A stretch of DNA of 64,000 bases from Basidiobolus meristosporus CBS 931.73 (lineage: Eukaryota; Fungi; Basidiobolomycota), in contig MCFE01000112.1 of NCBI GenBank assembly GCA_002104905.1, positions 1-64,000 of the forward strand. The letters run 5' to 3'. This document shows, piece by piece, positions 10,125 to 35,020 of this stretch; position 1 is the stretch's first letter; each line of letters opens with the position of its first letter. Under the pieces are notes generated by a model, which worked only from the letters and a program-made list of their open reading frames with translations, ran no database searches and was not told the DNA's origin. The position numbers and the translations under genes were made by a program.

Positions 10125-10260
10125 TATAGGCATATTGATGGATGCTCTGACCAAGATACACAGTACACAGAGCCCATGGAAGATACCCTGTATGGCAATG
10201 AGTGTGCTAAACAAAATGAGCACTACATTGAGTCTGTGGAATGAACTTAAAGCTGTTAGA
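10125..10260 (+). pseudogene. Family A 3' remnant (C-terminal repeats), left edge of the array
   Basis: ggatgctctgaccaagatacacagtacacagagcccatggaagat matches the A repeat; truncated on the left by the CpG-depleted block. Confidence 0.7.
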
Positions 10261-10612
10261 TTTGCGTTGATTAAATATTACTTGCTTAATATGTAGTAGC
10301 AGAAGTATGATCCATGCCAGCACAAGAACAAGAGTAAGGTTAGAGCAGAATAAAGCAGTCCCGCAATATCAGCCACTAGTACCTTTCTGAGTAGCCAAAA
10401 TGGATAAGTCAGCTGGCGCAGATAGTTGATACAATATCTAGTCGAGTTCCTGAGAGCTGTAAAACGATGGACTCCAGTATTTTGGCATATATGGCATTGT
10501 GCGGAGACTGCTCTACTTGCTAATTGCTTACATGAATAGGAGTAGTAATGACTACATGATCCATTAGCCTATTTATTGTGGTGGGATCACAATAGTATTA
10601 AGCCTATTCATA

Positions 10613-10900
10613 TCATTAGCTGTCTCTGTATCTACGTCTACGGTAACATGATGTCTGATCGTCATCTTCACTCGAGTCTTGGTTTTCATCCTTGTCGGGA
10701 GTAAATGATTGCACATATGTCAACGTAGATGGTTGGAAAGTGCCTGAGCATTCTGTGCGGAGTTAGTTTAAACATTGTCCAACAAGGGATGGGGACTCTA
10801 GCTGGCATCGATGGTTCAGTCTCATGGTCTACTTATTGGTTGTCATGTGTAGCTATGGGTGTTGCAAAATACACACCGAATAGGATGAAGTGCTGTGAGC
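10613..10900 (-). pseudogene. Family B' pseudogene
   Basis: Homologous to B (tctacgtctacgg, gatggttggaaagtgcctgagc) with internal deletions and no intact start. Confidence 0.7.
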
Positions 10901-11499
10901 ATGAAGGTTTTGACAGAAGTATTCTTATTGCTTGTTCTACGCTGTTTCTTCCTGATATCAGTTGGTGTAATGTGTTGGATAGCCTACAGAGATAGCGATT
11001 TTGTGATGGGATTTATTATGACATCAACAAAAATAAATAAACAATCCTCTTCAATTTTGATCTTGCTTTACCACCTTGGAAGGGACAAACTAAAATGACT
11101 CATACTACGCCTTTTCAAGCTATGGCTTGAGGTGAGAACACAGGAATGGCTTCGGTCTTACGTAGTTCTTGATTTCATAGTTTTAGAATGCTAAGCTAAT
11201 CTGGTTATATAGCAACCTGTAGCAATCTTTGTGAGTGTTTTGGGATATCTTCACCAGCCATCAGTCGATAGTATACTGAGCCAGATTTACGATGCATTGC
11301 ATCAACTACCTTAGGTAGGTTTAGCAAAAATGCAACTCTCCATCACTTCATATATCGCCTCTACCCAATTGACCTCTATTGCACCAGATAAATCTTCAAG
11401 TCGGAACATTAACCGAGGGTTGTGTTGATTTGAAATTATAGAGTCATAAGAGTAGTGATAGCCAAGGGTATCAATGTGTATTCATCATAAGATTATCAC

Positions 11500-11869
11500 A
11501 ACTATATGGATGTGAATGAGGGCAAAGATGAAGGCGAAGGTGAGGACTCGATAGATGACACTTCAACTCAGCCAGAGTCATCCTACAACATGACAAACTG
11601 CAATATAGCCGATATGCAGCCAAGACAGGCCTTGTTGGACAGAGTGAACGCTCACTCATCCAGTGATGCTGATGCCCTGTCGAACTCTAATCAGTTTGAC
11701 CAAGCGCAGGTTGTCGACCAAACCCTCTATCAGCCTAAGCAGCAACAGCCCCTAGATCATCATCACCCAGCCAACCGCCCGTAGCCATGTTGGACGCCAG
11801 AAGTACAAGAGATCTGCGCATAAGTACTTCAAGATCAGATATTTCAGTGGGAATCGATACATTGAATAA
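11500..11869 (+). pseudogene. Family C pseudogene (5' half lost, frameshift)
   Basis: MDVNEGKDEGEGED...DQTLYQPKQQQ matches C; signal peptide missing; frameshift at cagcccctagatc. Confidence 0.8.
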
Positions 11870-12166
11870 ATAAACATTTCATTTGGTCACCCTATATTAA
11901 TATGAAACATCATCAGCCGTGGTTCGTGAATTACCACACTACTGCTGAAATATCAAAAGCATATGCGTATATATTAGGGTATATATTGGTGTATTTATCA
12001 GTGTATTTATCGTGTTGTTACCCAATCAAGTACGCGATATCAATGCGATTGAGCCGATGATGACAGAGCGAATGCTAATTTTCAATCTGATAAAGTGCGA
12101 GTTCATCAAAGTTAACTAACTATTGCTACCATCAACGTTGTAACCATGTTATAATGGTTCCCATGC

Positions 12167-12173
12167 TATATAT
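12167..12173 (+). promoter_or_regulatory. TATA-like box of family A genes
   Basis: atgcTATATATtcc about 41-47 nt upstream of the ATG, conserved in all array A copies. Confidence 0.55.
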
Positions 12174-12213: not shown

Positions 12214-12792
12214 ATGCGTGCATTCATTGTATCATTGATCTTGGGCCTTGCCTCTCTTCAAGCCGCCGTTGCTGCTCCAGTCCCATGCTCCGAATCATGC
12301 AACCGTGAGCATAGAAGAGTCCGTTATCGCAGGTATTCATGCTCGGACCAAGAAAGCAACTGCTACCAGCAAGTCCAGGTTCAGCCCACTGTTGAAACGC
12401 CAAATATCCAAGTGCCATTGTTACGTCAGGTGTTCACCACCGTGACCAGAAAGCATGACAATCTGAACACTGCCAACGCCAACAGTGACAAGAGTCTCGA
12501 TGTTCAGTTTCAAGCAGGTCCTAGCCTCGAAGTAGAAGGCTCAGCCAGCGCATCCGAGTACGCCAAACAGAAGGGTGCTGAACACTCCGAAGATGGCTCT
12601 GGTTACCCCATTGTTATGGTTCAGCCTGCGCAAGATGAGACATACTCCACACCAGTAGTGGATACCCAATGCATCGAAGGATGCTCTGACCAAGATACAC
12701 AGTACACTGAGCCCATGGAAGATGTTCAATGTGGCGATAACTGTGCTAATCAGGACCCACAGTATACTGAGCCCATGGAAGACACTCAATGA
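12214..12792 (+). CDS. Secreted protein, family A (192 aa)
   Basis: Signal peptide MRAFIVSLILGLASLQAAVA, C-x3-C-x12-C-x6-C with RRVRYRRY, C-terminal 20-aa Cys/acidic repeats; five near-identical intact copies. Confidence 0.88.
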   Translation: MRAFIVSLILGLASLQAAVAAPVPCSESCNREHRRVRYRRYSCSDQESNCYQQVQVQPTVETPNIQVPLLRQVFTTVTRKHDNLNTANANSDKSLDVQFQAGPSLEVEGSASASEYAKQKGAEHSEDGSGYPIVMVQPAQDETYSTPVVDTQCIEGCSDQDTQYTEPMEDVQCGDNCANQDPQYTEPMEDTQ

Positions 12793-13512
12793 CCCAACGA
12801 CTGCACTTGAGCCCAAATGCAATAAAGTTCCATTATTCATTTTATTTTTCGCCTCATACGTGAGCAGAAATATAGCCATTAACAGCATGGGAGCAAAGAG
12901 CGTTTGACAAACTTAAAACCAAGCCAATTTCCACACTTCACTCTGATGATCCGAAGTCCAGTCACCAATTCAGGAGAAGGGTAGGAAACGTCTTGAAGTA
13001 CTGCTTGAAGGTAGTGAGTGGCTTATTTAATATGCTCAGCGAGGGCTTAGTCAACATGGATATCGGACATCCTAGAGTGTATCGCTATGTCAAAAAGTCC
13101 AACTATTGCTCACCACCATTACCAGAAAACATGGTATCCTGAGTGCACATATAATATGCACCACTAATTATAATGAAGAAAATTAGTGCTTGATATTCGC
13201 AATTCAGAGGGGACACAACCAAAATAATTCACACTGTCATGTGAGGAGTTGTTAGATGTTCTGAGCATAATGGTTTTAACGTCTAATATGCCTGACTGAA
13301 AGGCACTGCGTATCCATATCTATGTTTGGTTATTTCGGTTGATGCTCATTCCACTCATCCCTGTGTTCACATCTACGCTGTTTCTTCCGGATATCAGTTG
13401 GTGTAATCTTATTTGCAGAAGAAATGTGCGTGTTTTATAGCATGCAGAAATAGCGATTATATGATAGGATTTATTATGAATGCCAAACCAATGTTTACAT
13501 GATCCGATTGAG

Positions 13513-13947
13513 TCAAAAGCGGCCGCTGTATCTACTTCTACGGTAGCGTCGTTGACAACGTTTGCACGATGGCTGATCGTCGTCGTCACTCGAGTCTTGA
13601 GTATCATCCTCATCGGGGGTAATTGATTGTACATATGTCGGTGCAGATGGTTGGTACAATGTTTGATCTACTTGCTGCACCTGGTCGTACTGATTCTGGT
13701 TGGAAAGTGCCTGAGCGTTCTGTGCAGAATGAGTCTGAGCGTTGTCCAACAATGGATAGGCATTCGGGGACTCTAGTTGATAGTATGTTGGTGCATATGA
13801 CACTAATGGTTCATTGTCGGCATTGCCGCCAAAGTCCACTGGGACACCCTGGTCTACTTGCTGGTTGTCATATGTTGCAATGGGCGATGCATAAGATGCA
13901 CCGAATAGGAATAATAAGGCGGATAGAATGCGGAAAGTGCGTTGCAT
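13513..13947 (-). CDS. Secreted protein, family B (144 aa from ATG of MQRTF)
   Basis: The ORF-track start is a TTG; the first ATG at 13947 gives signal peptide MQRTFRILSALLFLFGASYA-SP; Q/N/Y-rich core, Asp tract, basic tail CKRCQRRYRRSRY. Confidence 0.88.
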   Translation of the reverse strand: MQRTFRILSALLFLFGASYASPIATYDNQQVDQGVPVDFGGNADNEPLVSYAPTYYQLESPNAYPLLDNAQTHSAQNAQALSNQNQYDQVQQVDQTLYQPSAPTYVQSITPDEDDTQDSSDDDDQPSCKRCQRRYRRSRYSGRF

Positions 13948-14689
13948 GTTGGCTCCTGATGACACACTGGAAGGCAAACAGTTGCTTTTATGTATGGTTT
14001 GCTAGATTCATCAGCGATCATCAGCAACCAAACCCAGTTTACTAAATTATGCAGCAAAGGTGAGTAAAGTTAATCAGCATTTCACTTTCATTGCAATCAT
14101 CAGTGAATAGGTGTTGATTAACACCGTAATCCCGGCGACCAATCACTTCAGTACATCAAGAAAAATAAATAAACATTCGTCTTCAATTCTGGGCTTGCTA
14201 TACCACTTTGGAATGACAAACGCGGTAGTGAAGGGACAAACTAAAATGACTCATACTACGCCTTTTCAAGCTATGGCTTGAAGTGAGCACACAGGAATCG
14301 CGTCGTTCTTGCGTAGTTCTCGATTTCATCGTCGAAGGCCACCAAACTACTCTGATTATATAGTACCCTGCAGCTATTTTTATGAGTATGTTGGGATTAT
14401 GAACGAATTAACATCTTCACCGGCCATCAGTCGATAGTATACTGAACTATATTTACGATTTAGCATTATGCATTGCATCGACCACCTCAAGTCCGCTTAG
14501 CAAAAATGTAACTCGCCATCACTTTGCTGGCTTCATATATCACCTCTATCCAAGCGATCTCTATTGCAGCAGATGAACCTAGAGTTGCATTGATTTGAGA
14601 TCGTAGATTCATAGGGATAGTGATTGCTAAGGGTATTAATGTGTACCTATCACTATGACTATCAGCATGTGGCTTTCCAAATCTTCAAT

Positions 14690-14990
14690 GATGTAGCTAC
14701 TTTTTCTTTTGGCCATCGTTGTTGCTCCAATTCCACGCTCCAAATCATTATCGTAGTTCGTCATGCTCCGATTGAGCAAGTAACTGCCACCAGCAAGCCC
14801 GAGTTCTGCCAACTGTAGAGACTTCGAATGTCTAAGTAGGATTGTACGTTGAAGGATGCGTTGATCAGGATATACAGTACACTGAGCCCATGGAAGTTGC
14901 TCAGTTTGGCAATGACTGCGCTAATCAGGACTTACTGTATGCTGACTTTATGGACGACACTCAACGTACCGACAACTGCACTTAATTCAA
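14690..14990 (+). pseudogene. Family A remnant inside the B-C divergent spacer
   Basis: gttgctccaattccacgctcc...gaaggatgcg...actgagcccatggaag matches A with large deletions; equivalent remnants at about 18490-18880, 22120-22460, 26770-26950 and 31140-31320. Confidence 0.7.
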
Positions 14991-15202
14991 TAAATCTCGA
15001 TTATCCATATCATTTGCTCTTAACGCCAATCTAACTTGATTGCTAATAGCTAAACCAGGTAGTTAGTTGATGGGCAACAAAAGAAGGACACAGCATGTGA
15101 ATTCCTGGCCTCAAGTGAGTCAGATACAGGGTGTAGTATAGTAGACTATGCAAAATACCACTATAAAGTGAGCTTACGACTGGTTTTACGATATTCATCA
15201 AA

Positions 15203-15757
15203 ATGCAGCTTACTCTCACTTTGTTTGCTTTGTACCTTGCTTCTGTCCATGCATTCCCTGCCACAGAGGATACCTCTTCTCAGGTTAGCTACGGTGACAA
15301 TTTGTGCGGGGAGCAAGTAAGTCCTTGCTACCTAGAAACTCAATCGCCTGCAGATGACTACCAGCCGGAACAGGACGAGGGTGATCACTATATGGATGGG
15401 AATGGGGGTGAAGATGAAGGCGAAGGTGAAGATTCAATGGATGGCACTACAACTCAGCCAGAATCATCCTACGAGATACCCAACTTCAATATAGCCGACC
15501 TGCAACCAAGACAGGCCTTGTTGGACAGAGTGAACGCTCACTCATCCAGTGATGCTGATGCTCTGTCGAACTCTAATCAGTTTGACCAAGCGCAGGTTAT
15601 CGACCAAACCCTCTATCAGCCTAAGCAGCAACAGCCGCGGATCATCATCACTCAGCCAGCCGCCCGTAGCTATGGTGGAGGCCAGAAGAAGTACAAGAGG
15701 TCGGCACATAGGTACTTCAAGATCAGATATTTCAGCGGGAATCGATACATTGATTAA
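15203..15757 (+). CDS. Secreted protein, family C (184 aa)
   Basis: Signal peptide MQLTLTLFALYLASVHA-FP, Cys pair, D/E tract, ALSNSNQFDQAQVIDQTLYQP, basic aromatic tail; TATAAA at 15162 and aataaa right after the stop. Confidence 0.88.
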   Translation: MQLTLTLFALYLASVHAFPATEDTSSQVSYGDNLCGEQVSPCYLETQSPADDYQPEQDEGDHYMDGNGGEDEGEGEDSMDGTTTQPESSYEIPNFNIADLQPRQALLDRVNAHSSSDADALSNSNQFDQAQVIDQTLYQPKQQQPRIIITQPAARSYGGGQKKYKRSAHRYFKIRYFSGNRYID

Positions 15758-16101
15758 ATAAACATGTCATTTGGCCACCCTATATTAATATGAAACATCA
15801 TCAGCCGTAATTCGTGAATTACCACACTACTGCTGAAATATCAAAAGCATAGGTGTATATATTAGGGTATATATTGGTGTACTTATCAGTGTATTTATCG
15901 TACTGTAACCAAATAAACTACGCGATATCAATGCGATTGAGCCGATGATGGTAGAGCAAATACTGCTTTTCAATCTGATAAAGTGTGAGTTCATCAAAGT
16001 TAACTAACTATTGCTGCCATCAGTGTTGTAATCATGTTATAGTGGTTCCCATGCTATATATTCCCCAGTGTACTTAGCAATGAACTCAGTAGTTCTCAAA
16101 G

Positions 16102-16680
16102 ATGCGTGCATTCATTGTATCATTGATCTTGGGCCTTGCCTCTCTTCAAGCCACCATTTCTGCTCCAGTCCCATGCTCCGAATCATGCAACCGTGAGCAT
16201 AGAAGAGTCCGTTATCGCAGGTATTCATGCTCGGACCAAGCGAGCGACTGCTACCAGCAAGTCCAGGTTCAGCCCACTGTTGAAACGCCAAACGTCCAAG
16301 CGCCATTGTTGCGTCAGGTGTTCACCACCGTGACCAGAAAGCATGACAATCTGAACACTGCCAACGCCAACAGTGACAAGAGTCTCGATGTTCAGTTTCA
16401 GGCAGGCCCTAGCCTCGAAGTAGAAGGTTCAGCCAGCGCATCCGAGTACGCCAAACAGAAGGGTGCTGAGCACTCAGATGATGGCTCTGACTACCCCACT
16501 GTTATGATTCAGCCTGCGCAAGATGAGACATACTCCACACCAGTAGTGGACACCCAATGCATCGAAGGATGCTCTGACCAAGATACACAGTACACTGAGC
16601 CCATGGAAGATGTTCAATGTGGCGATAACTGTGCTGATCAGGGCTCACAGTATACCGAGCCCATGGGAGACACTCAATGA
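16102..16680 (+). CDS. Secreted protein, family A (192 aa)
   Basis: Intact paralog of 12214..12792. Confidence 0.88.
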   Translation: MRAFIVSLILGLASLQATISAPVPCSESCNREHRRVRYRRYSCSDQASDCYQQVQVQPTVETPNVQAPLLRQVFTTVTRKHDNLNTANANSDKSLDVQFQAGPSLEVEGSASASEYAKQKGAEHSDDGSDYPTVMIQPAQDETYSTPVVDTQCIEGCSDQDTQYTEPMEDVQCGDNCADQGSQYTEPMGDTQ

Positions 16681-17373
16681 ACCAACGACTGCACTTGAGC
16701 CCAAATCCAATAAAATTTCATTATTCATGTTATTTTTCGCCTCGTATGGGATAGCAGAAATATAGCCGTTACCATCAAGAAAATAAGGGTATTTTACAAA
16801 CTCAACACCATGCCAATTTCCGCACTTCCCTCTGATAACCCGAAGTCCAGCGACTAATCCAGGAAAAGGGTAAGAAACGTCTTGAAGTACTGCTTGAAGG
16901 TCATGGGTAGCTTGTTCAATAGGTTTTATGTGGGTTTAGTCAATATGGAAATCGGGTCTCCTTGAGCATATCACCATTCCAAGAAGTTCTAGCATGAGTC
17001 CGCTATTATAGAGGGTAGGATACATGATAAATAAGGAGAATTCGGTGTGTGTCAAATCCAATAGTCTGGCGCTTTTGACTTATACTCACTGGTACCAGCA
17101 GAGTGAGAAAGTACCAAAGCCCAACTATTGCTTACTACCATTACCAGCACATAACTAATACGCACTACAGACGAATGGTTCTTATTGTAATTGAGAAAAT
17201 TGGTGCTTGATCGGCTCTTTCCCTTACATTAATATCGGTTAAATACTCGCCGTTGTTCCACCCATCCCTGTGGTCATGTCTCTTTTGTGACTTTTTTTCC
17301 TAGTATTAATTGTCAGAAACTGGAGTGATGTCGGTTATATATTACATTATCTTATTTATTAAACCTATTCATA

Positions 17374-17808
17374 TCAATAGCTGTCTCTGAATCTACGTCT
17401 ACGGTAGCGTTGTTGACAACGTTTACACGATGGTTGATCGTCGTCGTCACTCGAGTCTTCAGTGTCATCCTCGTTGGGTGTAATTGATTGCACATATGTC
17501 GGCGCAGATGGTTGGTACAATGTCTGATCAACTTGCTGCACCTGCTCGTATTGATTCTGGTTGGAAAGTGCCTGAGCGTTCTGTGCGGAATTCATCTTCA
17601 AATTGTCCAACAATGGATAGGTGTCTGGAGACTCTAGTTGATAGTATGTTGGTGCATATGACACTAATGGTTCATTGTCGGCATTGCCGCCAAAGTCCAC
17701 TGGGATACCCTGGTCTACTTGCTGGTTGTCATACGTTGCAATGGGCGATGCATAAGATACACTGAATAGCAATACAAAGGCGGATAGGATGCGTAAAGTG
17801 CGTTGCAT
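17374..17808 (-). CDS. Secreted protein, family B (144 aa)
   Basis: Intact paralog from ATG at 17808; variant tail RRRRFRDSY. Confidence 0.87.
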   Translation of the reverse strand: MQRTLRILSAFVLLFSVSYASPIATYDNQQVDQGIPVDFGGNADNEPLVSYAPTYYQLESPDTYPLLDNLKMNSAQNAQALSNQNQYEQVQQVDQTLYQPSAPTYVQSITPNEDDTEDSSDDDDQPSCKRCQQRYRRRRFRDSY

Positions 17809-18489
17809 GTTGGCGCTTGATGACACACTGGAAGGTAAACAGTTGCTTTTATGTATGGTTTGCTAGATTCATCAGCGATCATCAGCAACCAAACCCCGTT
17901 TACTAAATTATGAAGCAAAGGTGAGTAAAGTTAATCAGCATTTCACTTTCATTGCACTGATCAGTGAGTAAGAGTTGATTAACATCGTAATCCAGGCGAC
18001 CAATCACTTCAGTACATGAAGAAAAATAAATAAACATTTGTCTTCAATTCTGGGCTTGGCATACCATTTTGGAATGACATACGCGGTAGTGAAGGGACTC
18101 GCCAAAATGACTCATACTACGCCTTTTCAAGCTATGGCTTGAAGTGAGCACACAGGAATGGCTTCATTCTTACGTAGTTCTTGATTTCATAGTCGTAGAA
18201 CGCCAGGCTACTCTGGTTTTATAACAACCTGTAACAATCTTTGTGAGTGTTATGGGATCATGACTGAATTAATATCTTCACCAGCCTTCAGTCGAAAGTA
18301 TACTGAGTTGAATTTACGATGTAGCATTATGCATTGCACCAATTAGCTTAGCTTAGCTTAGCAAAAATGTAACTCACCATCACCTCTGTCCAAGTGATCT
18401 TCCAGTGTAGCAGACGAATCTTCGAGTTGTGTTGATCTGAAACTGAAGAGCCGTAAGAATAGTGATTGTTAAGGGTATTAATGTGTATT

Positions 18490-18930
18490 TATCACAGCAC
18501 TTCAACTGCTAGTTTCTAATGCCCCGACCGAGCAAGTGACTGTTAACAGCAAGTCCAAGTTCTGCATACTATTGAAACGTCGAATATCCAAGTGCCATTA
18601 TTATGTCAAGTGTTCACCACTGTTACCAAAAAACATGGCAATCTGAGCACTGCTAACGCTAATAGGGAAAAGAGTCTTAATGCCAAGCTGGCCCCAGCCT
18701 CGAAGTAGAAGGTTCAGCCAGCGCATCCGAGTACGCCAAACTGAAGAGTGCTGAGCAATCAGACGATGGCTCTAATTTCCCATTGTTGTGACTTAGCCTG
18801 CACAATATGAGACATACACTACACCAGTAGTAGGCACCCAATGCGTTGAAGAATGCGCTGATCAAGATACTGAAAGGAATACAAGAGATCGGCTCGGATA
18901 TTATAGTGGAAATAGACACAATGAACATCA
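18490..18930 (+). pseudogene. Fused A remnant and C 3' remnant (C gene lost from this unit)
   Basis: A-like sequence with stops to about 18875, then aatacaagagatcggct...agtggaaatagacac matching the C tail, then the A promoter. Confidence 0.65.
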
Positions 18931-19217
18931 TTTCACTTGACCACCTTATATTAAAATGAAACATCAGCATTGATTCGTAAATCACTATACTACAGCTGGA
19001 ATATCAAAAGCATATGTGCATTTATTGGTGTATTTATCAGTGTATTTATCCTCCTGTAATCATGCAAACTACGCGATGATGGTAGACAGAATGCAAATTT
19101 TCAATCTGATCAAAGTTAACTAACTATTGCTGCCATCAATGTTAAAACCATATTATACTGGCTCCCATGCTATATATTCCAGAGTGAATTCAGCAATGAA
19201 CTCAGTAGTTCTTACAG

Positions 19218-19796
19218 ATGCGTACATTCATTGTATCCTTGATCTTGGGCCTTGCCTCTCTTCAAGCCGCCGTTGCTGCTCCAGTCCCATGCTCCGAATC
19301 ATGCAACCGTGAGCATAGAAGAGTCCGTTATCGCAGGTATTCATGCTCGGACCAAGAAAGCAACTGCTACCAGCAATCCCAGGTTCAGCCCACTGTTGAA
19401 ACGTCAAACGTTCAAGTGCCACTGTTGCGTCAGGTGTTCACCACCGTGACCAGAAAGCATGACAATCTGAACACTGCCAACGCCAACAAGGACAAGAGTC
19501 TCGATGTTCAGTTTCAAGCAGGCCCTAGCCTTGAAGTAGAAGGCTCAGCCAGCGCATCCGAGTACGCCAAACAGAAGGGTGCTGAACACTCAGACGATGG
19601 CTCTGGTTACCCCATTGTTATGATTCAGCCTGCACAAGATGAGACATACTCCACACCAGTAGTAGACACCCAATGCATCGAAGGATGCTCTGACCAAGAT
19701 ACACAGTACTCTGAGCCCATGGAAGATGTTCAATGTGGCGATGACTGTGCTAATCAGGACCCACAGTATACTGAGCCCATGGAAGACACTCAATGA
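19218..19796 (+). CDS. Secreted protein, family A (192 aa)
   Basis: Intact paralog. Confidence 0.88.
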   Translation: MRTFIVSLILGLASLQAAVAAPVPCSESCNREHRRVRYRRYSCSDQESNCYQQSQVQPTVETSNVQVPLLRQVFTTVTRKHDNLNTANANKDKSLDVQFQAGPSLEVEGSASASEYAKQKGAEHSDDGSGYPIVMIQPAQDETYSTPVVDTQCIEGCSDQDTQYSEPMEDVQCGDDCANQDPQYTEPMEDTQ

Positions 19797-20329
19797 ACCA
19801 ACGACTGCACTTGAGCCCAAATCTAATAAAGTTCCATTATTCATTTTATTTTTCGTCTCATATGTGATAGCAGAGATGTAGCCATTACCAGCATGGGAAC
19901 AAGAGCATTTGACAAACTCAACACCACGCCAATCTCCATACTTCCCTCTGATGACCCGAAGTCCAGCTACCAATTCAGGAGAAGAGTAAGAAGCTGGTAA
20001 AGCTTGGCTATGCACGTGTTTAAGTACTGCTTGGAGGTATTGGGTGGCTTAATTAATAAGCTCAACCCGGGCCGAGTCAATATGGACATCGGGCATCCTA
20101 GAGTGTATCGTTATCTCAAGAAGTCCAACTATTACTTACTACCATTGCCAGAAAACATAGTATCCTGAGCGCACATATAACATGCACCACAGACGAGTGA
20201 TTCTTGATATAATTGAGAAAATTAGCGCTTGATCGGCTCTTTCCCTTACTTCAATCTCTGTTGATACTCGTTTGTTCCACCCATCCCTGTGGGCATATCT
20301 CTTATGTAGCTTTTTTTCCTAGTGTCCAT

Positions 20330-20510
20330 ATTTGAAAGCTTGTTTACAGAAGAACTGTGTGTACTTGATAGCTTACATGAATAGGGAAACTGGTGTGACA
20401 TCGATGGTTCAGTCACAGTGCTGCCACCAAAGTCCACTGGGGCCTACTTGTTGGTTGCCATATGTAGCAATGGGTGATGCATAGGATACACTGAATAGGA
20501 ATACAAAGTT
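20330..20510 (-). pseudogene. Family B' remnant
   Basis: gatggttcagtcacagtgctgccaccaaagtccact...gggtgatgcataggatacactgaatagg matches the B/B' 5' part, with deletions. Confidence 0.6.
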
Positions 20511-23226: not shown

Positions 23227-23570
23227 ATAAACATTTCATTTGGCCACCCTATATTAATATGAAACATCATCAGCCGTGCTTCGTGAATTACCACACTACT
23301 GCTGAAATATCAAAAGCATATGCGTATATATTAGGGTATATATTGGTGTACTTATCAGTGTATTTATCGTGTTGTAACCAAATAAAGTACGCGATATCAA
23401 TGCGATTGAGCCGATGATGGTAGAGCGAATGCTGCTTTTCAATCTGATAAAGTGTGAGTTCATCCAAGTTAACTAACTATTGCTACCATCAACGTTGTAA
23501 CCATGTTATACTGGTTTCCATGCTATATATTCCCGAGTGTACTTGGCAATGAACTCAGCAGTTCTCAAAG

Positions 23571-24800: not shown

Positions 24801-25248
24801 TCAATAGCTGTCTCTGTATCTACGTCTACGGTGGCGTCGTTGACACTGTCTACACGCTGGCTGATTGCCATCATCACCAGAGTCTAGGTCTTCATCCTCG
24901 TCGGGAGCAAATGATTGCACATACGTCGACGCAGATGGTTGGTACAATGTCTGATCTCTTTACTGCACCTGGCCATACTGATTCTGGTTGGGAAGTGCCT
25001 GAGCATTCTGTACGGAGTCAGTTTGAATATTGTTCAACAAGAGATAGGTGATTGGGGACTCTAGCTGGTAATCTGCCGGTGCATATGATATCGATGGTTC
25101 AGTCCCAGTGCTGCCACCATAGTCCACTTGGACACCCAGGTCTACTTTTTGATTGCCATATGTGGCAATGGGCGATGTATTGGATACACCGAATAGGAAT
25201 ACCAAGGTGGATAAAATGCGTGGATAAAATGCGGAAATTACGTTGCAT
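24801..25248 (-). pseudogene. Family B' pseudogene
   Basis: ATG at 25248; a 13-nt duplication (gtggataaaatgc x2) shifts the frame after MQRNFRILST; in-frame TAA after QYGQVQ. Confidence 0.8.
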
Positions 25249-25661
25249 ATTGGCACTTAGTTACACACTGGAATGCAAAAAGTTGCTTTTGTTTTTATCA
25301 ACAATCATCAGCAGCCGAAGCTCAGTTGATAGCTATTCTATGTGGCCAATCATCAATAAAAACAATCCACAGCCAATTGAACCCATGTATCATCGATCTA
25401 CGCACTTCATTTATGTGGTTCGGGTTGCTCACCACGATTGCTTGCCACTATTCCATTTTAGTAGTTTATTCATTATTGTTCGCAAATTGGTGAGAACAAA
25501 ACCACGCATTCCTGTGGTCACGTCCGCTGTTTCTTCCTGATGTTAGTTGGTGTAATCTTATTTGCAGAAGAAATATGTGTGTTGGATAGCTTACAGTAGT
25601 AGCGATTATTATACAGGATTAATTATGAATGCCAAACTAGTGTTATCGTGATCCGATTGAG

Positions 25662-26096
25662 TCAAAAGCGGCCTCTGTATCTACGTCTACGGTAGCGTCG
25701 TTGACAACGTTTACACGATGGCTGATCGTCGTCGTCACTCGAGTCTTGTGTGCCATCCTCGTCGGGAGTAATTGATTGCACATATGTCGATGCAGATGGT
25801 TGGTACAATGTCTGATCTACTTGCTGCACTTGCTCAAATTGATTCTGATTGGAAAGTGCCTCAGCATTCTGTGCAGAATTAGTCTGAGCGTTGTCCAACA
25901 ATGGATAGGTGTCTGGAGACTCTAGTTGATAGTATGTTGGTGTGTACGACATTAATGGCTCATTGTCGGCATTGCTACCAAAGTCCACCGGGATACCCTG
26001 GTCTACTTGCTGGTTGTCATACGTTGCAATGGGCGATGCGTAAGATGCACCGAATAGGAATACAAAGGCGGATAGAATGCGGAAAGTGCGTTGCAT
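25662..26096 (-). CDS. Secreted protein, family B (144 aa)
   Basis: Intact paralog from ATG at 26096. Confidence 0.88.
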   Translation of the reverse strand: MQRTFRILSAFVFLFGASYASPIATYDNQQVDQGIPVDFGSNADNEPLMSYTPTYYQLESPDTYPLLDNAQTNSAQNAEALSNQNQFEQVQQVDQTLYQPSASTYVQSITPDEDGTQDSSDDDDQPSCKRCQRRYRRRRYRGRF

Positions 26097-27133
26097 GTTG
26101 GCTCTTGGTGACACACTGGAAGGCAAACAGTTTCTTTTATGTATAGTTTGCTAGATTCATCAGCGATCATCAGCAACCAAACCCAGTTTACTAAATTATG
26201 AAGCAGAGGGGAGTAAAGTTAATCAGCATTTCATTTTCATTGTAATGATCGATGAGTAAAAGCTGATTAACACCGTAATCCCGGCGACCAATCACTTCAA
26301 TAAATAAACACTCTTCAATTCTGCGCCGCCGCACGATTTGGGAATGACATTAGCGGTTGTGAAGAGACAAACCAAAATGACTCATACTACGCCTTTTCAA
26401 GCTATGGCTTGAGGTGAGCACACAGGAATGGCTTCGATCTTACGTAGTTCTTGATTTCATAGTCATAGAATTGTAACCTGCTCAGGTTATATAGCGATCT
26501 CTAGCTATTTTAATGCGTATTATGGGATTATGAATGAATTCATATTTTACCAGTCATCATTCGGTAGCACACTGAGCTAGATTAACGATTTAGCATCAAG
26601 CGTTGCATCAACCACCACAAGATGATACAGCGCCTCTATCCAAGGGATCTCTATTGCCGCAGATGAACTTCAAGTCGAAACATGAACCTAGATTTGTGTT
26701 GATTTCAAATTGTAGATTCATAGGAATAGTGGTTGCTAAGGGTATTAATGTGAATTTATCACTGCGACTATTAACATATGGCTTTCCAAATGCTCAATGA
26801 CGTAGCTACTTTTCTTTTGGCCGTCATTGCTGCTTCAATACACTGAGCCCACGGAATATGCTCAGTATTGTAATGATTGTGCTTAGCAGGACTCACCGAC
26901 TGCAGACTTTATGGATGACACTTAATGTACCGATAAGTGCACTTAATCCAATGAATCTCGATTATCCATATGAGCCCATATCTTCACAAGTACTTAGTGG
27001 ATAGTCAACCACGGCTGGACATGGCATGTGAATTCATGGCTTCAAGTGAGTCAGATATAGGATGCAGTATAATAGACTACGCCAAATACCACTATAAAGT
27101 GAGCTTACGACTGGTTTTACGCTATTCATCAAA

Positions 27134-27688
27134 ATGCAGCTTACTCTCGCTTTGTTCGCTTTGTACTTTGCATCTATCCATGCATTACCCGCCACAGAAG
27201 ATACCTCTTCTCAGGTTAGCAACGACAACAACTTGTGCGGGGAGCAAATAAGTCCTTGCTACCAAGAAACTCAATCGCCTGCATATGACTATCAGCCGGA
27301 ACAGGATGAGGGTGATATCTATATGGATGAGAATGAGGGCGAAGATGAAGGCGAAGATGAGGACTCAGTGGATGACACTCCAACTCAGCCAGAGTCATCC
27401 TACAACATGCCAAACTTCAATGTAGCCGACCTGCAACCAAGGGAGACATTGTTGGACAGAGTGAACGCTCATTCATCCAGTGATGCTGATGCCCTATCGA
27501 ACTCTAATCAGTTTGACCAAGCGCAGGTAGTCGATCAAACCTTCTATCAGCCTAAGCAGCAACAGCCACGGATCATCATTACCCAGCCAGCCACCCGTAG
27601 CTATGGTGGAGGCCAGAAGAAGTACAAGAGGTCGGCACATAAGTACTTCAAGATCAGATATTTCAGTGGGAATCGATACATTGATTAA
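27134..27688 (+). CDS. Secreted protein, family C (184 aa)
   Basis: Intact paralog. Confidence 0.88.
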   Translation: MQLTLALFALYFASIHALPATEDTSSQVSNDNNLCGEQISPCYQETQSPAYDYQPEQDEGDIYMDENEGEDEGEDEDSVDDTPTQPESSYNMPNFNVADLQPRETLLDRVNAHSSSDADALSNSNQFDQAQVVDQTFYQPKQQQPRIIITQPATRSYGGGQKKYKRSAHKYFKIRYFSGNRYID

Positions 27689-28038
27689 ATAAACATGTCA
27701 TTTGGCCACCCTATATTAATATGAAACATCATCAGCCGTGATTCGTGAATTACCACACTACAGCTGAAATATCAAAAGCATATGTGTATATATTGATATA
27801 TATATATATATTGGTGTATTTATCAGTTTATTTATCGTACTGTAACCATATAAACTACGCGATATCAATGCGATTGAGCCGATGATGGTAGAGCGAATGC
27901 TGCTTTTCAATCTGACAAGGTGTAAGTTCATCAAAGTTAACTAACTATTGCTACCATCAACGTTGTAACCATGTTATACTGGTTCCCATGCTATATATTC
28001 CTGAGTGTAATTAGCAATGTGCTCAGTAGTTCTCAAAG

Positions 28039-28617
28039 ATGCGTGCATTCATTGTATCATTGATCTTGGGCCTTGCCTCTCTTCAAGCCACCATTGCTGC
28101 TCTAGTCCCATGCTCCGAATCATGTAATCGTGAGCATAGAAGAGTACGTTATCGCAGGTATTCATGCTCGGACCAAGCAAGCAACTGCTACCAGCAAGTG
28201 CAGGTTCAACCCACTGTTGAAACGTCAAACGTCCAAGTGCCATTGTTGCGTCAGGTGCTCACCACCGTGACCAGAAAGCATGACAATCTGAACACTGCCA
28301 ACGCCAACAGTGACAAGAGTCTCGATGTTCAGTTTCAAGCAGGCCCTAGCCTCGAAGTAGAAGGTTCAGCCAGCGCATCCGAGTACGCCAAACAGAAGGG
28401 TGCTGAACACTCAGACGATGGCTCTGGATACCCCATTGTTATGGTTCAGCCTGGGCAAGATGAGACATACTCCACACCAGTAGTGGACACCCAATGCATC
28501 GAAGGATGCTCTGACCAAGATACACAGTACACTGAGCCCATGGAAGATGTTCAATGTGGCGATAACTGTGCTGATCAGGACTCACAGTATACCGAGCCCA
28601 TGGGAGACACTCAATGA
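28039..28617 (+). CDS. Secreted protein, family A (192 aa)
   Basis: Intact paralog. Confidence 0.88.
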   Translation: MRAFIVSLILGLASLQATIAALVPCSESCNREHRRVRYRRYSCSDQASNCYQQVQVQPTVETSNVQVPLLRQVLTTVTRKHDNLNTANANSDKSLDVQFQAGPSLEVEGSASASEYAKQKGAEHSDDGSGYPIVMVQPGQDETYSTPVVDTQCIEGCSDQDTQYTEPMEDVQCGDNCADQDSQYTEPMGDTQ

Positions 28618-29290
28618 CGCAACGACTGCACTTGAGCCCAAATCCAATAAAGTTCCATTATTTTTCGCCTCATATGTGATAGCAGAAATATAGCCGTTAT
28701 CAGCATGGGAGCAAGGGCGTTTGTCAAACTCAACACCACGCTAATTTCCATACTTCCCTCTGATGACCCGAAGTCCAGCTACCAATTCAGGAGAAGAGTA
28801 AGCAGCTGGTAAAGCTTGGCTATGCACGTGTTTAAGTACTGCTCGGAGGTAGTAGATGTCATATTTGATAAGCTCAACCCGGGCCTAGTCAATATGGAGA
28901 TAGGGCATCCTAGAGTGTATCGCTATCTCAAGAAGTCCAACTATTACTCACTACCATTGCCAGAAAACATAGTATCCTGAGCGCACATATAACATGCACC
29001 ACAGACGAGTGATTCTTGATATAATTGAGAAAATTAGCGCTTGATCGGCTCTTTCCCTTACTTCAATCTCTGTTGATACTCGTCATTATTCCACCCATCC
29101 CTGTGGGCACATCTCTTGTGTATCTTTTTTTCCTAGTGTTTATATTTGAAAGCTTGTTTACAGAAGAATTGGGTGTACTTGGTAGCCTTAGGTAGCTGTT
29201 TACACGATGGCTGATCGTCGTTGTCACTTGAGTCTTGCATGATAGGATTTATTATGAATGCCAAACCAATGTTTACATGATCCGATTGAG

Positions 29291-29718
29291 TCAAAAGCGG
29301 CCGCTGTATCTACGTCTACGGTAGCGTCGTTGACAACGTTTACACGATGGCTGGTCGTCGTCGTCACTCGTGTCTTCAGTGTCATCCTCGTCGGGAGTAA
29401 TTGATTGCACATATGTTGATGCAGATGGTTGGTACAATGTCTGATCTCTTTGCTGCACCTGGCTATACTGATTCTGGTTGGGAAGTGCCTGAGTATTCTG
29501 TACGGAATTAGTTTGAATATTGTTCAACAAGGGATGGGGACTCCAGCTGGTAGTCTGTTGGCGCATATGATATCAATGGTTCAGTCTCATAGTCCACTTG
29601 AACACCTAGGTCTACCTATTGGTTGCCATATGTAGCAATAGGCGATGCATAGGATACACCGAATAGGAATACCTAGGTGAATAAAATGCGTGGATAAAAT
29701 TCGGAAATTACGTCGCAT
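29291..29718 (-). pseudogene. Family B' pseudogene with a B-type 3' end
   Basis: Same 13-nt duplication as 24801..25248 plus further indels; ends RRYSGRF with a B-type 3' flank. Confidence 0.78.
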
Positions 29719-30077
29719 ATTGGCTCTTAGTTGCACACTGGAATGCAAGAAGTTGCTTTTGTGTTTATCTACGATGTATCATCCATATATGTAGATTGCC
29801 TGCCACTAGTCCATTTTAGCAGTTTATTCATTATTGTTCGCAAATTGGTCAGAACAAAACCAAAATGTTTGATGTGAGGAGTCATTGCTCATTCCACACA
29901 TCCCTGTGGTCACGTTTCCGCTGGCTCCTCCTGATGTCAGTTGGTGTAATCTTGTTTGCAGAAGAAATGTGTGTGTTGGATAGCTTGTAGCGATTATTTC
30001 ACAGGATTAATTATGAATGCCACATACGAATGGATTTATTATGAATGCCAAACTAGTGTTTACATGATCCGATTGAG

Positions 30078-30512
30078 TCAAAAGCGGCCTCTGTATCTAC
30101 GTCTACGGTAGCGTCGTTGACAACGTTTACACGATGGCTGGTCGTCATCGTCACTCGAGTCTTTATTGTCATCCTCGTCGGGAGTAATTGATTGCACATA
30201 TGTCGGCGCAGATGGTTGGTACAATGTCTGATCAACTTGCTGCACCTGCTCGTATTGATTCTGGTTGGAAAGTGCCTGAGCGTTCTGTGCAGAATTCGTT
30301 TGAGCGTTGTCTAGCAATGGATAGGCGTCTGGGGACTCTAGCTGATAGTATGTTGGTGTATATGACATTGATGGTTCATTGTCGGCATTGCCACCAAAGT
30401 CCACCGGGATGCCCTGGTCTATTTGCTGGTTGTCATACGTTGCAATGGGCGAAGCATAAGATACACCGAATAGGAATACTAAGGCGGATAGGATGCGGAA
30501 AGTGCGTTGCAT
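30078..30512 (-). CDS. Secreted protein, family B (144 aa)
   Basis: Intact paralog from ATG at 30512. Confidence 0.88.
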   Translation of the reverse strand: MQRTFRILSALVFLFGVSYASPIATYDNQQIDQGIPVDFGGNADNEPSMSYTPTYYQLESPDAYPLLDNAQTNSAQNAQALSNQNQYEQVQQVDQTLYQPSAPTYVQSITPDEDDNKDSSDDDDQPSCKRCQRRYRRRRYRGRF

Positions 30513-31501
30513 GTTGGCTCCTGATGACACACTGGAAGGCAAACAGTTGCATTTATGTATGGTTTGCTAGATTCATCAGCGATCATCAGCTACCAAACCC
30601 AGTTTACTAAATTATGAAGCAGAGGGGAGTAAAGTTAATCAGCATTTCACTTTCATTGCAATGATCAGTGAATAGGTGTTGATTGAAACCGTAATCTAAG
30701 CGACCAATCACTTCAGTACATGAAGAAAAATAAATAAACATTCTTCAATTCTTTTAGAATGACATTAGCGGTTGTCAAGAGACAAACCAAAATGACTTGA
30801 AGTGAGCACACAGGAATGGCTTCGTTCTTACGTAGTTCTTGACTTCATAGTCGTAGAATAGGAACCTGTAGCTATATTAATGCGTATTATGGGATTATGA
30901 ATGAATTCATATTTTACCAGTCATCATTCGGTAGCATACTGAGCTAGATTAACGATTTAGCATCAAGCATTGCATCAACCACCACAAGATGATACAGCGC
31001 CTCTATCCAAGGGATCTCTATTGCCGCAGATGAACTTCAAGTCAAAACATGAACCTAGATTTGTGTTGATTTCAAATTGTAGATTCGTAGGAATGGTGAT
31101 TACTAAGGATATTAATGTGTATTTGTCACCGCGACTATTAACATATGGCTTTCCAAATGCTCAATGATGTAGCTACTTTTTCTTTTGGCCGTCGTTGCTG
31201 CTTCAATACACTGTGCCCACGGAATATGCTCAGTGTTGTAATGATTGTGCTTAGCAGGACTCACCGACTGCGGACTTTATGGACGACACTTAATGTACCG
31301 ACAACTGCACTTAATTCAATAAATCTCGATTATCCATATGAGCCCATATCTTCACAAGTACTTAGTGGATAGTCAACCACGGCTGGACATGGCATGTGAA
31401 TTCATGGCTTCAAGTGAGGCAGATATAGGATGCAGTATAATAGACTACGCCAAATGCCACTATAAAGTGAGCTTACGACTGGTTTTACGCTATTCATCAA
31501 A

Positions 31502-32056
31502 ATGCAGCTTACTCTCGCTTTGTTCGCTTTGTGCTTTACTTCCATCCATGCATTCCCTGCCACGGAAGATACCTATTCTCAGGTGAGCAACGACAGCAAC
31601 TTGTGCGGGGAGCAAATAAGTCCTTGCTACCAAGAAACTCAATCGCCTGCATATGACTATCAGCCGGAACAGGATGAGGGTGATATCTATATGGATGAGA
31701 ATGAGGGCGAAGATGAAGGCGAAGGTGAGGACTCGATGGATGACACTTCAACTCAGCCAGAGTCATCTTACAACATGCCAAACTTCAATATGGCCGACCT
31801 GCAACCCAGAAAGGCATTGTTGGACAGAGTGAACGCTCACTCATCCAGTGATGCTGATGCTCTGTCGAACTCCAATCAGTTTGACCAAGCGCAGATTGTC
31901 GACCAAACCCTCTATCAGCCTAAGCAGCAACAGCCTCAGATCATCATCACTCAGCCAGCCGCCCGTAGCTATGATGGAGGCCGGAAGAAGTACAAGAGAT
32001 CGGCGCATAAGTACTTCAAGATCAGATATACCAGTGGGAACCGATACATTGAGTAA
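31502..32056 (+). CDS. Secreted protein, family C (184 aa)
   Basis: Intact paralog. Confidence 0.88.
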   Translation: MQLTLALFALCFTSIHAFPATEDTYSQVSNDSNLCGEQISPCYQETQSPAYDYQPEQDEGDIYMDENEGEDEGEGEDSMDDTSTQPESSYNMPNFNMADLQPRKALLDRVNAHSSSDADALSNSNQFDQAQIVDQTLYQPKQQQPQIIITQPAARSYDGGRKKYKRSAHKYFKIRYTSGNRYIE

Positions 32057-32344
32057 ATAAACATTTCAATTGACCACCTTGTATTAATATGAAACATCAT
32101 CCGCCGTGGTTCGTGAATTACCACACTACAGCTGAAATATCAAAAGCATATGGGTATATGTTGGTGTATTTATTGTACTGCAATCATGTAAACCACACAA
32201 TATCAATGCAATTGAGCCGATGATGGTGGAGAGATTGCTAATTTGAGATCTGATAAAAGTTAACTAACTATTGCTACCATCAATGTTGTAACCATGCTAT
32301 ATATTCCCAAGTGAATTCAGCAATGAACTCAGTAGTTCTCAAAG

Positions 32345-32685
32345 ATGCGTACATTCATTGATCTTGGGCCTTGCTTCTCTTCAAGCCATCATTGCTGTTC
32401 CAGTCCCATGCTCCAAATCATGCAATCGTGAGCATAGAAGAGTCCGTTATCACAGGTATTCATGCTCGGACCAAGCAAGCAACTGCTACCAGCAAGTCTG
32501 CCAACGCCAACAGTGACAAGAGTCTCAATGCTCAGTTTCAAGCAGGCCCTAGCCTTGAAGTAGAAGGCTCAGCCAGTGCATCCGAGTATGCCAAACAGAA
32601 GAGTGCTGAACACTCAGAAGATGGCACCAATTACCCTATTGTTATGGCACAGCCTGCACAAGATGAGACATACTCCACACCATAC
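32345..32685 (+). pseudogene. Family A pseudogene
   Basis: Small deletion just after ATGCGTACATTCATTG (frameshift), a large internal deletion, and 3' truncation. Confidence 0.8.
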
Positions 32686-33060
32686 GGAAATCGGGTCTCT
32701 ATTCCAAGAAGCTATTATAGAATGCAAGGAGAATTTGGTGCGTGTCAAATCCAGTAATCTGGTCCTTTTGACTCACACTCATTGGTACCAGCAGAGCGAG
32801 AAAATACGAAAGCCCAACTATTGCTCACTACCATTACCAGCACATGACTAATATGCATTCTTATTATAATTGTGGAAATTGGTGCCTGATTGGCTCTCTC
32901 CGTTACTTCAATCTCTGTTGACCACCCATCTCTGTGGTCATGTGACTTTTTCCTGGTGTTAATTGTCAGAGACTGGTTACATAAATAGGGAAAATGGAGT
33001 GATGTTGGTCATATATTACATTATCTTATTTATCACACAATAGTATTAACCCTACTCATA

Positions 33061-33340
33061 TCAATAGCCATCTCTGTATCTACATCTACGGTAGTGTTGT
33101 TGACAACTTTGATTGTTGTTGTCACTGGAGTCTGGAGTAAACAATTGCACAAATGTGGGTGTAGATGGTTGGTACAATGTCTGATCTACTTGGTGCATCT
33201 GGTCATACTGATTCTTGTTGAAATGTGCCTGTGTGTTCTGTGCAGAATATGCCTGAGCATTGTCTAGCAATGGATAAGTGTGTGGGGACTATAGTGACAG
33301 TATGTTGGTGCATACAACATAAATGGTTCATTGTTGGCAT
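33061..33340 (-). pseudogene. Family B pseudogene, CpG-eroded, right edge of the array
   Basis: LDNAQAYSAQNTQAHFNKNQYDQMHQVDQTLYQP matches B; many CG changed to TG/CA relative to intact copies. Confidence 0.75.
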
Positions 33341-33399
33341 TCAAGGATTTTGTACCAAAGCACAAGATAATAAAACACTGAGCAGACTCTGCAACAGCC

Positions 33400-35020
33400 A
33401 TGCCAAAGAATATGCATATGTTTATTTTGGAGATCTAATGGGGACACTTGCTAAGGTACAGCTAAGTAAAGTGCTCTATCAAAGAATTGGGATGTTCAGA
33501 TAGGTTGGATCTGGATTGCTTTGTGAAGATCCTGCAATAGCTTCAAACCAATCCTGTTAGCCTAGATTTCAGCCAACTCTTCTTGATTACAGCCAACTCA
33601 TCTTGATATCTTGACAGCCTTACAATGCTAATTGTAGTCACTTTTCCTCATGAAGTCTTAACAGTGTCTTGTAGGTAGCTAAGCAGTCTCATCACAGTCT
33701 CATCACAGCATCTGAGTACCTTCCCCATTTCTACATTTTAGGAACTCCCATTTCAATGAGAAATATGATGGTGCTCTGATGACTCTTCAGTGGCATCGTT
33801 ACAGCCTTATTGTAGAGTCTTAGCTCTTTTCAACTTTCTACACCATTGGAATTCCTTCTGTTGGAAAAAAACATATAGGTGTACTAAGAGTGCTTCCATA
33901 GCCTTATCATAGCCTTGTCATGGTGTTGACATTGTTTTAGTTTATACCCAAGAGTCACTATATGCTATAAACTTAACAATATAGTCCAAATTGCTTAGCT
34001 CCATTATACCTCCACTGTACCAATAGGATACTTGAGGATATAGGCACTGCCATTTTGTTTACCCACTCACACTATTGGTTATCTGTATATAGTTTAAATC
34101 AAAAAGAACTACTGATTCTTCTTGATGCACTTTGGCATATGCTTATACCTGCCACAATTAGAACACTTGTATCATACCCCCATGATGATACTTCATCCTA
34201 ATGCTTACAGAGCTCTCATATGCAGCATACTGTTGGTAGCATATGATTCTGGCAAATTAAAGATCTGTGATATATATCATCTGCTCTGTAGGAAACTCTA
34301 TAAATGTGAAGTATGGACTTAAAGTCTTTTGGTACCTTGTCAGACTTAACAGAGTATGAATGCAATGGGAGAGGACACTCATATGCCCTGTCTTGTGCCT
34401 GTAAAGGAGTGGCTCAAGCCCTTATACATGCCCATTATATAGCAGCCATAGATGCAACATGCTGACATTGGTGATGAGCATCAGGAGGCACATTGCTACT
34501 ACATCTACATACAACTCACTATGCTTCAAGTGTGCTGTAGGTAGAAGCTGTCTCAAAGGGGCAATAGAATAAAATATATTCCACTCCACCAGTTCTCACA
34601 TTTATATCATTGCAAATGCATATGCTTCTTGATTAGTTTCCATAAAGGCACATAAGTCAATAATTGCACTGCAGTAATTTGCCAATGCTTTCTATTTTCA
34701 CCAGGATTCCAGGTGATTGAAGTGGGCACTATTATCTCTTATGCAGTTCTGTGATTACTGTTGGAGTATTGCTGAATGGCAAATTTGTTGCTTCTGATTG
34801 AAAGCCTTTACCCCAGCTGAAGTAATCCTTTTTGTTGTAAGAGGTTTGGGACAAACACCATATTCTGACTTTTGACAATTAACATGCTAACCATTGGGCA
34901 TACTAATGCTAATCTCTGTATGTTCTTTTTGAGGAAGCTGTATACTCCAATCATTGTTGTTAAGAGAAGAATAGTAGGTACCTATAATGGAATTGTTGTG
35001 CATCAACATTTAAAACTTAG
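33400..35020. mobile_element. CpG-depleted block, probable decayed transposon
   Basis: Almost no CG dinucleotides and no long ORF; interrupts the family A/B/C cluster. Confidence 0.5.

Follow-up and report, generated by a model that had tools for sequence, protein, structure and literature searches.

Tandem clusters of genes for orphan small proteins with signal peptides, lying near transposons and expanded within one lineage, are well known from fungi as small secreted protein (SSP) clusters, e.g. the effector clusters of Ustilago maydis. In Basidiobolus meristosporus CBS 931.73 we have analysed the first 64 kb (hereafter "the window") of scaffold MCFE01000112.1 (167,007 bp), which carries an array resembling such clusters and composed of three types of genes, named A, B and C, with the first intact A gene (A1) at 12214. 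The Basidiobolus array differs from SSP clusters in having a heterotypic unit of three genes on two strands, genes of fixed length under purifying selection, products that are predicted to be disordered and charge-patterned, and fused and split forms coexisting in the genus. No homology of A, B or C to any described SSP family was detected by profile search or Pfam, and no mention of the family was found in the literature on searching with locus tags and for the Basidiobolus secretome and transcriptome. The A/B/C family is undescribed, even though its kind, a tandemly amplified and lineage-specific secreted-protein cluster, is known; its distinguishing features are the heterotypic unit and a clear history of split and fused modules.

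Four other described systems resemble the locus in part. Silkmoth chorion arrays likewise consist of tandem units containing divergently transcribed genes, and their products are abundant secreted structural proteins. Yet in Basidiobolus the spacer between B and C measures 1.0-1.3 kb and holds a relic of an A gene instead of a compact shared promoter, the genes have their own TATA boxes, the unit lacks regularity and the proteins are not homologous. The Ustilago Rep1 repellents and other Kex2-processed repeat proteins are likewise secreted fungal precursors with dibasic sites, and represent a possible surface-material substitute in fungi devoid of hydrophobins; unlike them, the Basidiobolus proteins have no KR-separated internal repeats, the sole repeat being the CX3C units in the A tail. 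Cationic antimicrobial prepropeptides share with B and C the order of signal, acidic block and C-terminal cationic block, whereas in the Basidiobolus proteins the uncharged cores are best conserved, the cleavage site is not conserved and the order is reversed in A. Finally, coacervate bioadhesives such as sandcastle-worm cement and mussel foot proteins are co-secreted disordered sets with opposite charge blocks. By analogy, A, B and C might be compared with them as a multigene set of disordered proteins with opposite charge blocks and segments rich in Tyr and Lys/Arg/Gly; however, the sequences are unrelated, and all three Basidiobolus proteins are net acidic with both charge types within one chain.

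The array spans 10.1-37.3 kb of the window and repeats the unit B<- C-> A-> every 3.1-4.5 kb, as judged from an open reading frame (ORF) listing of 9-35 kb and from tblastn of one A, one B and one C protein against the window. It holds 14 intact intronless genes of invariant length, namely 5 A (192 aa), 5 B (144 aa from the ATG) and 4 C (184 aa), besides at least 17 decayed copies detected by tblastn. Gene models (NCBI/JGI) on a paralogous scaffold are intronless as well, with the identical lengths of 184, 192 and 144 aa. A preliminary description of the window had reported the tandem array and the 14 genes with their lengths, and on these points our ORF listing, tblastn and repeat analysis agree with it. 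Five of the six A copies listed there are intact, but the sixth is a frameshifted pseudogene. The gap of 344-350 nt from C stop to A start, given for four units, was recovered in three intact C-A pairs (344, 344 and 350 nt), while the fourth (~343 nt, before A1) follows a decayed C. The limits of 10125-33400 proved too narrow, as a decayed tail continues to ~37.3 kb; a divergent A-type subfamily lies near the beginning of the window (Table 1). The repeats fall into families with 5-8 copies each, 60-98% identical and spaced 3.1-4.5 kb apart, which indicates diverged tandem units. Since these units differ by 5-10% in DNA, they do not represent a collapsed or inflated assembly repeat, an artefact that is also ruled out by a colinear array of ~95% identity on a second B. 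meristosporus scaffold (L008). We consider it highly probable that the array arose by repeated unequal duplication of a three-gene unit of 3.1-4.5 kb, whose products are small, exported, acidic, predicted to be disordered and modular.

The preliminary description had treated A, B and C as three families, a view that profile-profile comparison with hhalign does not sustain. B and C are paralogues sharing a 38-residue Q/N-rich core (probability 98.3%, E 1.8e-14), and the alignment of A with C covers the signal peptide together with a C-x6-C-Y-Q loop (probability 80.6%, E 1.3e-5), the two Cys columns of which hardly vary in A, C and the fused proteins alike; comparison of A with B gave nothing beyond a 12-residue basic stretch (probability 1.5%). 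The A core has the motif PLLRQVFTTVTRKH..NLNTA..YQAGPS.E.EG and the B/C core the motif ALLD..ALSNSNQFDQAQ..DQTLYQP. That the two cores are ancient internal duplicates was rejected, the hhalign value of 6.3 lying inside the column-shuffle range of 5.4-15.1. The other modules are the signal peptide, acidic blocks, a short beta-prone segment and a strongly basic Arg/Lys/Tyr/Phe block, which forms the C-terminal part of B and C but lies N-terminally in A.

Moreover, these modules occur joined in single proteins of B. ranarum, where the A core is followed by a C-type core and tail (P0077, P0079 and P0081) or by a B-type core, an acidic block and a CxRC Arg-rich tail (P0082 and P0029), and P0082 aligns both to the A core and to the B core. 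P0077 and P0079 are single-exon ORFs (966 nt for 321 aa and 1086 nt for 361 aa, respectively) in ordinary neighbourhoods outside any array. At one B. meristosporus locus, the A tail runs in frame into a C lacking its signal peptide, with a frameshift further upstream in A. The shared modules and the fused ORFs make A, B and C one superfamily rather than three independent families. To judge from their sequences, A, B and C are very likely split versions of one genus-restricted superfamily, the joined versions of which are found in B. ranarum. The earlier suggestion that the products belong together thereby gains indirect support, as both the union of A core and B/C core in single B. ranarum ORFs and the in-frame junction in B. 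meristosporus would suggest. In P0079 (L010:5900-6985), the linker between A core and C core contains tandem 'KPKKHHT(W/S)E' and 'MEMP(T/M)MEKT' repeats, rich in His and Met, that are absent from the B. meristosporus genes.

A profile built from fused, A and C sequences (profile A5) was scored against all 1.84 billion cluster representatives and matched 46 proteins at E<=0.001. Ten matches not known from the earlier homologue searches were checked, and these come from B. ranarum, except for one repetitive metagenome protein. The homologues are 'hypothetical proteins' of B. meristosporus CBS 931.73 or B. ranarum, and UniRef labels two of them 'Secreted protein'. In terms of summed cluster sizes, B. 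meristosporus has ~89 distinct A, ~36 B and ~61 C sequences.

The linkage of the three genes is looser than the "fixed cassette" of the preliminary description. Within the array, the unit of A3 (unit 2) has no C gene and pseudogenes are many. Among the other B. meristosporus scaffolds, one holds a partial cassette (L004), one a version with 55-70% identity in the same B<- C-> A-> orientation (L005) and two hold C->A pairs without B (L006 and L007), other ratios occurring as well; 12 of the 18 contigs with C also hold A, contigs being told apart in the search tables by their lengths as a proxy. Synteny of the triple in relatives had been proposed as a check. In B. ranarum, an entire 11.7-kb contig is given over to C copies, at least 9 of them on the same strand, and 5 A copies lie on one strand of another contig; the homologue searches and array contigs gave no stand-alone B. 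The A and C arrays of B. ranarum are not interleaved, and since the contigs are short they could be neighbours. The C->A pairs, the loci devoid of B and the family-pure B. ranarum arrays indicate that the cassette is not a conserved operon-like unit; it is a B. meristosporus arrangement spread by segmental duplication.

Substitution rates among the intact copies (pairwise Nei-Gojobori), which had also been proposed as a check, are those of purifying selection in all three types. The ratio of nonsynonymous to synonymous substitutions (dN/dS) is 0.35 for A (mean dS 0.09), 0.22 for B (mean dS 0.24) and 0.29 for C (mean dS 0.21), and no frame-breaking change is present in the 14 intact copies. These ratios of 0.22-0.35 mark A, B and C as constrained coding genes. 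The mean dS of the A copies is less than half that of B and C in the same units (12214-32056), which suggests gene conversion or a separate duplication history of the A segment. Every gene is preceded by a TATA box of its own, 40-50 nt from the ATG and present also in paralogues with 55-70% protein identity, and no 8-mer common to the promoters of A, B and C was found.

The observed/expected (o/e) ratio of CpG is 0.57-0.78 across the intact array, 0.26-0.29 in its decayed end and 0.01-0.08 in the neighbouring repeat DNA. In the decayed end, CpG sites have undergone C>T and G>A changes 4-6x more often than between intact copies. As CpG is kept in the intact array, lost in the flanks and reduced in the decayed end, the intact array does not seem to be treated as silent repeat, which is indirect evidence that it is not silenced repeat DNA. 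The blocks 6001-10000, 42001-46000 and 54001-56000 of the window are nearly CpG-free (o/e 0.01-0.08) with normal GpC, suggesting methylation-linked CpG decay of repeat DNA.

Regarding the proteins themselves, the preliminary description had assigned signal peptides to all of them. The N-termini are indeed hydrophobic, with cleavage-type sites such as AVA/AP, SYA/SP and VHA/FP, from which we infer signal peptides on the strength of the sequence alone. Its statement that no known domain is recognisable holds as well, and in the search of 1.84 billion proteins no relative of checked source lies outside the genus, apart from the metagenome protein. A Pfam scan of A, B, C and 19 relatives returned nothing above threshold, the best sub-threshold result being that of four members against the mussel myticin prepropeptide (E 0.012), and a PDB profile search gave no match even at E<=10. 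AlphaFold2 models reached a mean pLDDT (predicted local distance difference test) of 49 for P0077 and 46 for A1, with almost no secondary structure beyond the signal helix; at such values fold matches to the two models are meaningless. According to these models, the A, B and C proteins are probably disordered.

The mature proteins have an isoelectric point of 4.1-4.4 and a grand average of hydropathy (GRAVY) of about -1, and are rich in Q, D, E, S and Y. Charge is sharply segregated along the chain: in B, a block of -9 precedes a CxRC/Arg/Tyr tail of +8; C combines a block of -15 with a Lys/Arg/Tyr/Phe tail of +7; and A has a basic 4-Cys N-region with the remainder at -18. Like coacervate-forming proteins, they thus combine predicted disorder, segregated opposite charges and aromatic/cationic segments, and we infer their co-secretion. 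In the alignments, conservation peaks in the A core, the B/C core and the C tail, the latter being nearly identical between two species whose proteins are overall 33-45% identical. The 8 Cys of A are spaced C-x3-C-x13-C-x6-C ... C-x3-C-x14-C-x3-C, the C-terminal four being absent in many relatives, and among relatives the A tail carries between 0 and 3 CX3C units.

Several known classes were considered and rejected. Hydrophobins have eight Cys in the pattern C..CC..C..C..CC..C and match Pfam Hydrophobin or Hydrophobin_2; A also has eight Cys, but in a different layout, and there is no Pfam match. Kex2-processed repeat proteins (KEPs) carry a signal peptide and several tandem repeats, each bounded by KR or RR, and no such repeats are present, dibasic sites being confined to the basic blocks. 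Curli-type functional amyloids have repeated strand-turn-strand units, a beta-solenoid model and Pfam Curlin_rpt, whereas here there is no Pfam match and essentially no modelled secondary structure, and the A core is not detectably related to the B/C core. UniRef names P0009, P0013 and P0018 after CBM1, yet P0009 and P0013 have no CBM_1 match at E<=0.1, and the name is probably a pattern match on the Q-C..C tail.

The reading that we favour, tentatively and with a probability of roughly 40%, is that A, B and C leave the cell together as constituents of an extracellular adhesive, wall layer or matrix. The three proteins would be made in bulk, with gene amplification providing dosage, and secreted together; outside the cell they would associate through their basic Tyr/Arg blocks set against acidic blocks, with the conserved cores serving as specific contacts or cross-beta segments, and the association would yield an extracellular material, be it a matrix, an adhesive or a layer of the spore or hyphal wall. 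This reading is drawn from the high dosage of near-identical constrained copies, the fused A and B/C halves and the block polyampholyte composition with Tyr/Arg segments. The fused ORFs suggest that A-type and B/C-type halves act in one context. Members of the Basidiobolaceae produce adhesive-tipped capilliconidia (PMC13370150), so that a bulk secreted glue does exist in the biology of these fungi. A, B and C might even form a stoichiometric extracellular structure, as the preliminary description conjectured. A more specific proposal, which we regard as unlikely though worth stating, is that A, B, C and the fused proteins related to them build up a self-assembling, charge-patterned glue or coat hitherto unknown in fungi, e.g. 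the capilliconidial adhesive or a spore/hyphal surface layer in a lineage without hydrophobins, assembled by heterotypic association of split modules from ~200 amplified genes.

Several observations speak against an extracellular material. An exact-sequence lookup of A1 matched only the genome scaffold and no transcript-like contigs, and the literature search gave no transcript, proteome or localisation data, expression itself being presumed. In B. ranarum, A and C lie in separate family-pure arrays without a stand-alone B, so that neither a fixed stoichiometry nor the cassette is required, and common descent by segmental duplication suffices to account for the linkage in B. meristosporus. The conservation of the basic tails extends to their exact sequence and is not one of composition only, which would fit a specific ligand or a released peptide equally well. 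Moreover, the alignments are shallow and AlphaFold may under-call structure.

In the main rival reading, A, B and C would be prepropeptide precursors, in which an acidic pro-region neutralises a cationic Arg/Lys/Tyr peptide freed by dibasic processing, with an antimicrobial or signalling role in a microbe-rich gut/dung niche. The candidate peptides would be the C tail of ~25 aa, the B tail of ~17 aa and the N-terminal 4-Cys block of A. The anionic-then-cationic order of such precursors is present in B, whose -9 block directly precedes the +8 tail, and in C (-15, then +7), and the C tail is almost invariant between the two species in spite of their overall divergence; KR and RR sites exist in the tails, and the four weak myticin prepropeptide matches point the same way, although they are far below the curated threshold. 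A, however, does not follow this order, as its basic block is N-terminal with no pro-piece ahead of it. A precursor should also combine a conserved release site with a less conserved pro-piece, and the reverse was found: the site before the tails varies (KR is KK in B. ranarum C, and CKRC is CNRC or CERC in B relatives), while conservation is highest in the uncharged, Q/N-rich cores, a part that in antimicrobial-peptide precursors would belong to the dispensable pro-region. Kex2-type cleavage at internal RR sites would in addition shred the B tail, and dN/dS of 0.2-0.35 gives no sign of diversification. Peptide precursors are therefore, in our view, an improbable explanation, though a serious one.

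Selection and conservation bear likewise on two further readings, which fit these data less well. A lineage-specific SSP cluster among transposons could encode host- or competitor-directed effectors acting on insect, amphibian or microbial partners, and the family is indeed an orphan, of secreted type and tandemly amplified, with a copia-type element (55-59 kb) and CpG-free repeats nearby, in a fungus with an animal-gut lifestyle (PMC9391592). But purifying selection, invariant lengths and cores near-identical in two species show none of the divergence of an arms race, the very many near-identical copies point to dosage rather than diversity, and a low-complexity charge-block composition is unusual for folded effectors; we consider effectors quite unlikely. 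Even less probable is an amplification without function, a by-product of a duplication-prone genome in which most copies are silent or decaying and dosage has no meaning. The pseudogene fragments, at least 17 beside 14 intact genes, and the ~95%-identical paralogous array on another scaffold would agree with it, but not a dN/dS well below 1 in A, B and C, the lack of frame breaks in 14 copies, the TATA boxes kept in distant paralogues, the CpG retained in the intact part and lost in the decayed part and flanks, or the conservation of the family in B. ranarum.

Basidiobolus is an isolated lineage that has received little study; it alternates between insects, the guts of amphibians and reptiles, and soil, with occasional infections of humans. 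Roughly 200 of its genes appear to belong to one undescribed secreted family, whose split and fused architecture offers a ready hypothesis on which parts interact. Should the extracellular material prove real, it would represent fungal structural or adhesive proteins of a new class, and would offer a simple recombinant system in which to follow the assembly of charge-patterned disordered proteins; in the case of peptide precursors, the family would provide cationic peptides from a new source. Either way, the array is a clear case of a heterotypic gene unit that is amplified, homogenised and decaying, with an intact part that retains CpG and a decayed edge that has lost much of it.

Table 1. 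A, B and C genes, relics and related copies in the window, with the evidence for each
Feature	Position	Strand	Evidence
A1, intact, 192 aa; signal, basic 4-Cys N-region, conserved A core, acidic tail with two CX3C units	12214..12792	+	ORF listing, tblastn, exact lookup
A2, intact, 192 aa	16102..16680	+	ORF listing, tblastn
A3, intact, 192 aa	19218..19796	+	ORF listing, tblastn
A4, intact, 192 aa	23571..24149	+	ORF listing, tblastn
A5, intact, 192 aa	28039..28617	+	ORF listing, tblastn
B1, intact, 144 aa; signal, Q/N-rich core shared with C, acidic block, CxRC Arg/Tyr basic tail	13513..13947	-	ORF listing, tblastn, hhalign, charge profile
B2, intact, 144 aa, tail variant	17374..17808	-	ORF listing, tblastn
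B3, intact, 144 aa	20957..21391	-	ORF listing, tblastn
B4, intact, 144 aa	25662..26096	-	ORF listing, tblastn
B5, intact, 144 aa	30078..30512	-	ORF listing, tblastn
C1, intact, 184 aa; signal, C-x6-C loop, acidic block, shared core, IIIT segment, Lys/Arg/Tyr/Phe tail	15203..15757	+	ORF listing, tblastn, alignment, charge profile
C2, intact, 184 aa	22672..23226	+	ORF listing, tblastn
C3, intact, 184 aa	27134..27688	+	ORF listing, tblastn
C4, intact, 184 aa	31502..32056	+	ORF listing, tblastn
Decayed first unit, A C-terminal fragment	10116-10247	+	tblastn
Decayed first unit, B pseudogene	10646-10889	-	tblastn
Decayed first unit, C pseudogene without first third	11500-11866	+	tblastn
A relic without A core, ~240 nt upstream of C1	14734..14964	+	tblastn; also in locus L004
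A relic without A core (same type), ~240 nt upstream of C2	22141-22433	+	tblastn
A pseudogene upstream of A3, three frame changes	18514..18874	+	tblastn
B pseudogene adjoining B4	24855..25220	-	tblastn
B relic beside B3	20381-20507		tblastn
B relic beside B5	29166-29690		tblastn
B relic	33076-33294		tblastn
Sixth A copy, pseudogene with internal deletion and frameshift	32337..32757	+	ORF listing, tblastn
Array end, decayed and CpG-poor	35023..37338	+	tblastn, CpG analysis
C fragments in decayed array end	35023-35082, 36562-36696	+	tblastn
A-like copy, frameshifted, in decayed array end	35459-36002	+	tblastn
A fragment in decayed array end	37200-37338	+	tblastn
Intact 165-aa A-type gene, divergent subfamily, 56% identity to A1	214..711	+	alignment, tblastn
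Truncated sibling of the A-type gene at 214..711	2131-2499	+	tblastn

Beyond the array, three ORFs on the minus strand (44398-44763, 46727-47032 and 51928-52248) have C-terminal tails rich in Gly/Arg/Tyr/Trp(/Cys) after acidic stretches, and the window may be a secreted-protein island. The copia-type retroelement lies at 55082-58848 (+) over two ORFs, one with Pol beta-barrel, GAG-pre-integrase and integrase core and the other with RVT_2. Two further minus-strand ORFs, at 39883-40368 (161 aa) and 50568-50966 (132 aa), have no Pfam match and share a similar stretch, ..WP.SGSMF.SMIGHG.., and they are probably copies of one unclassified repeat.

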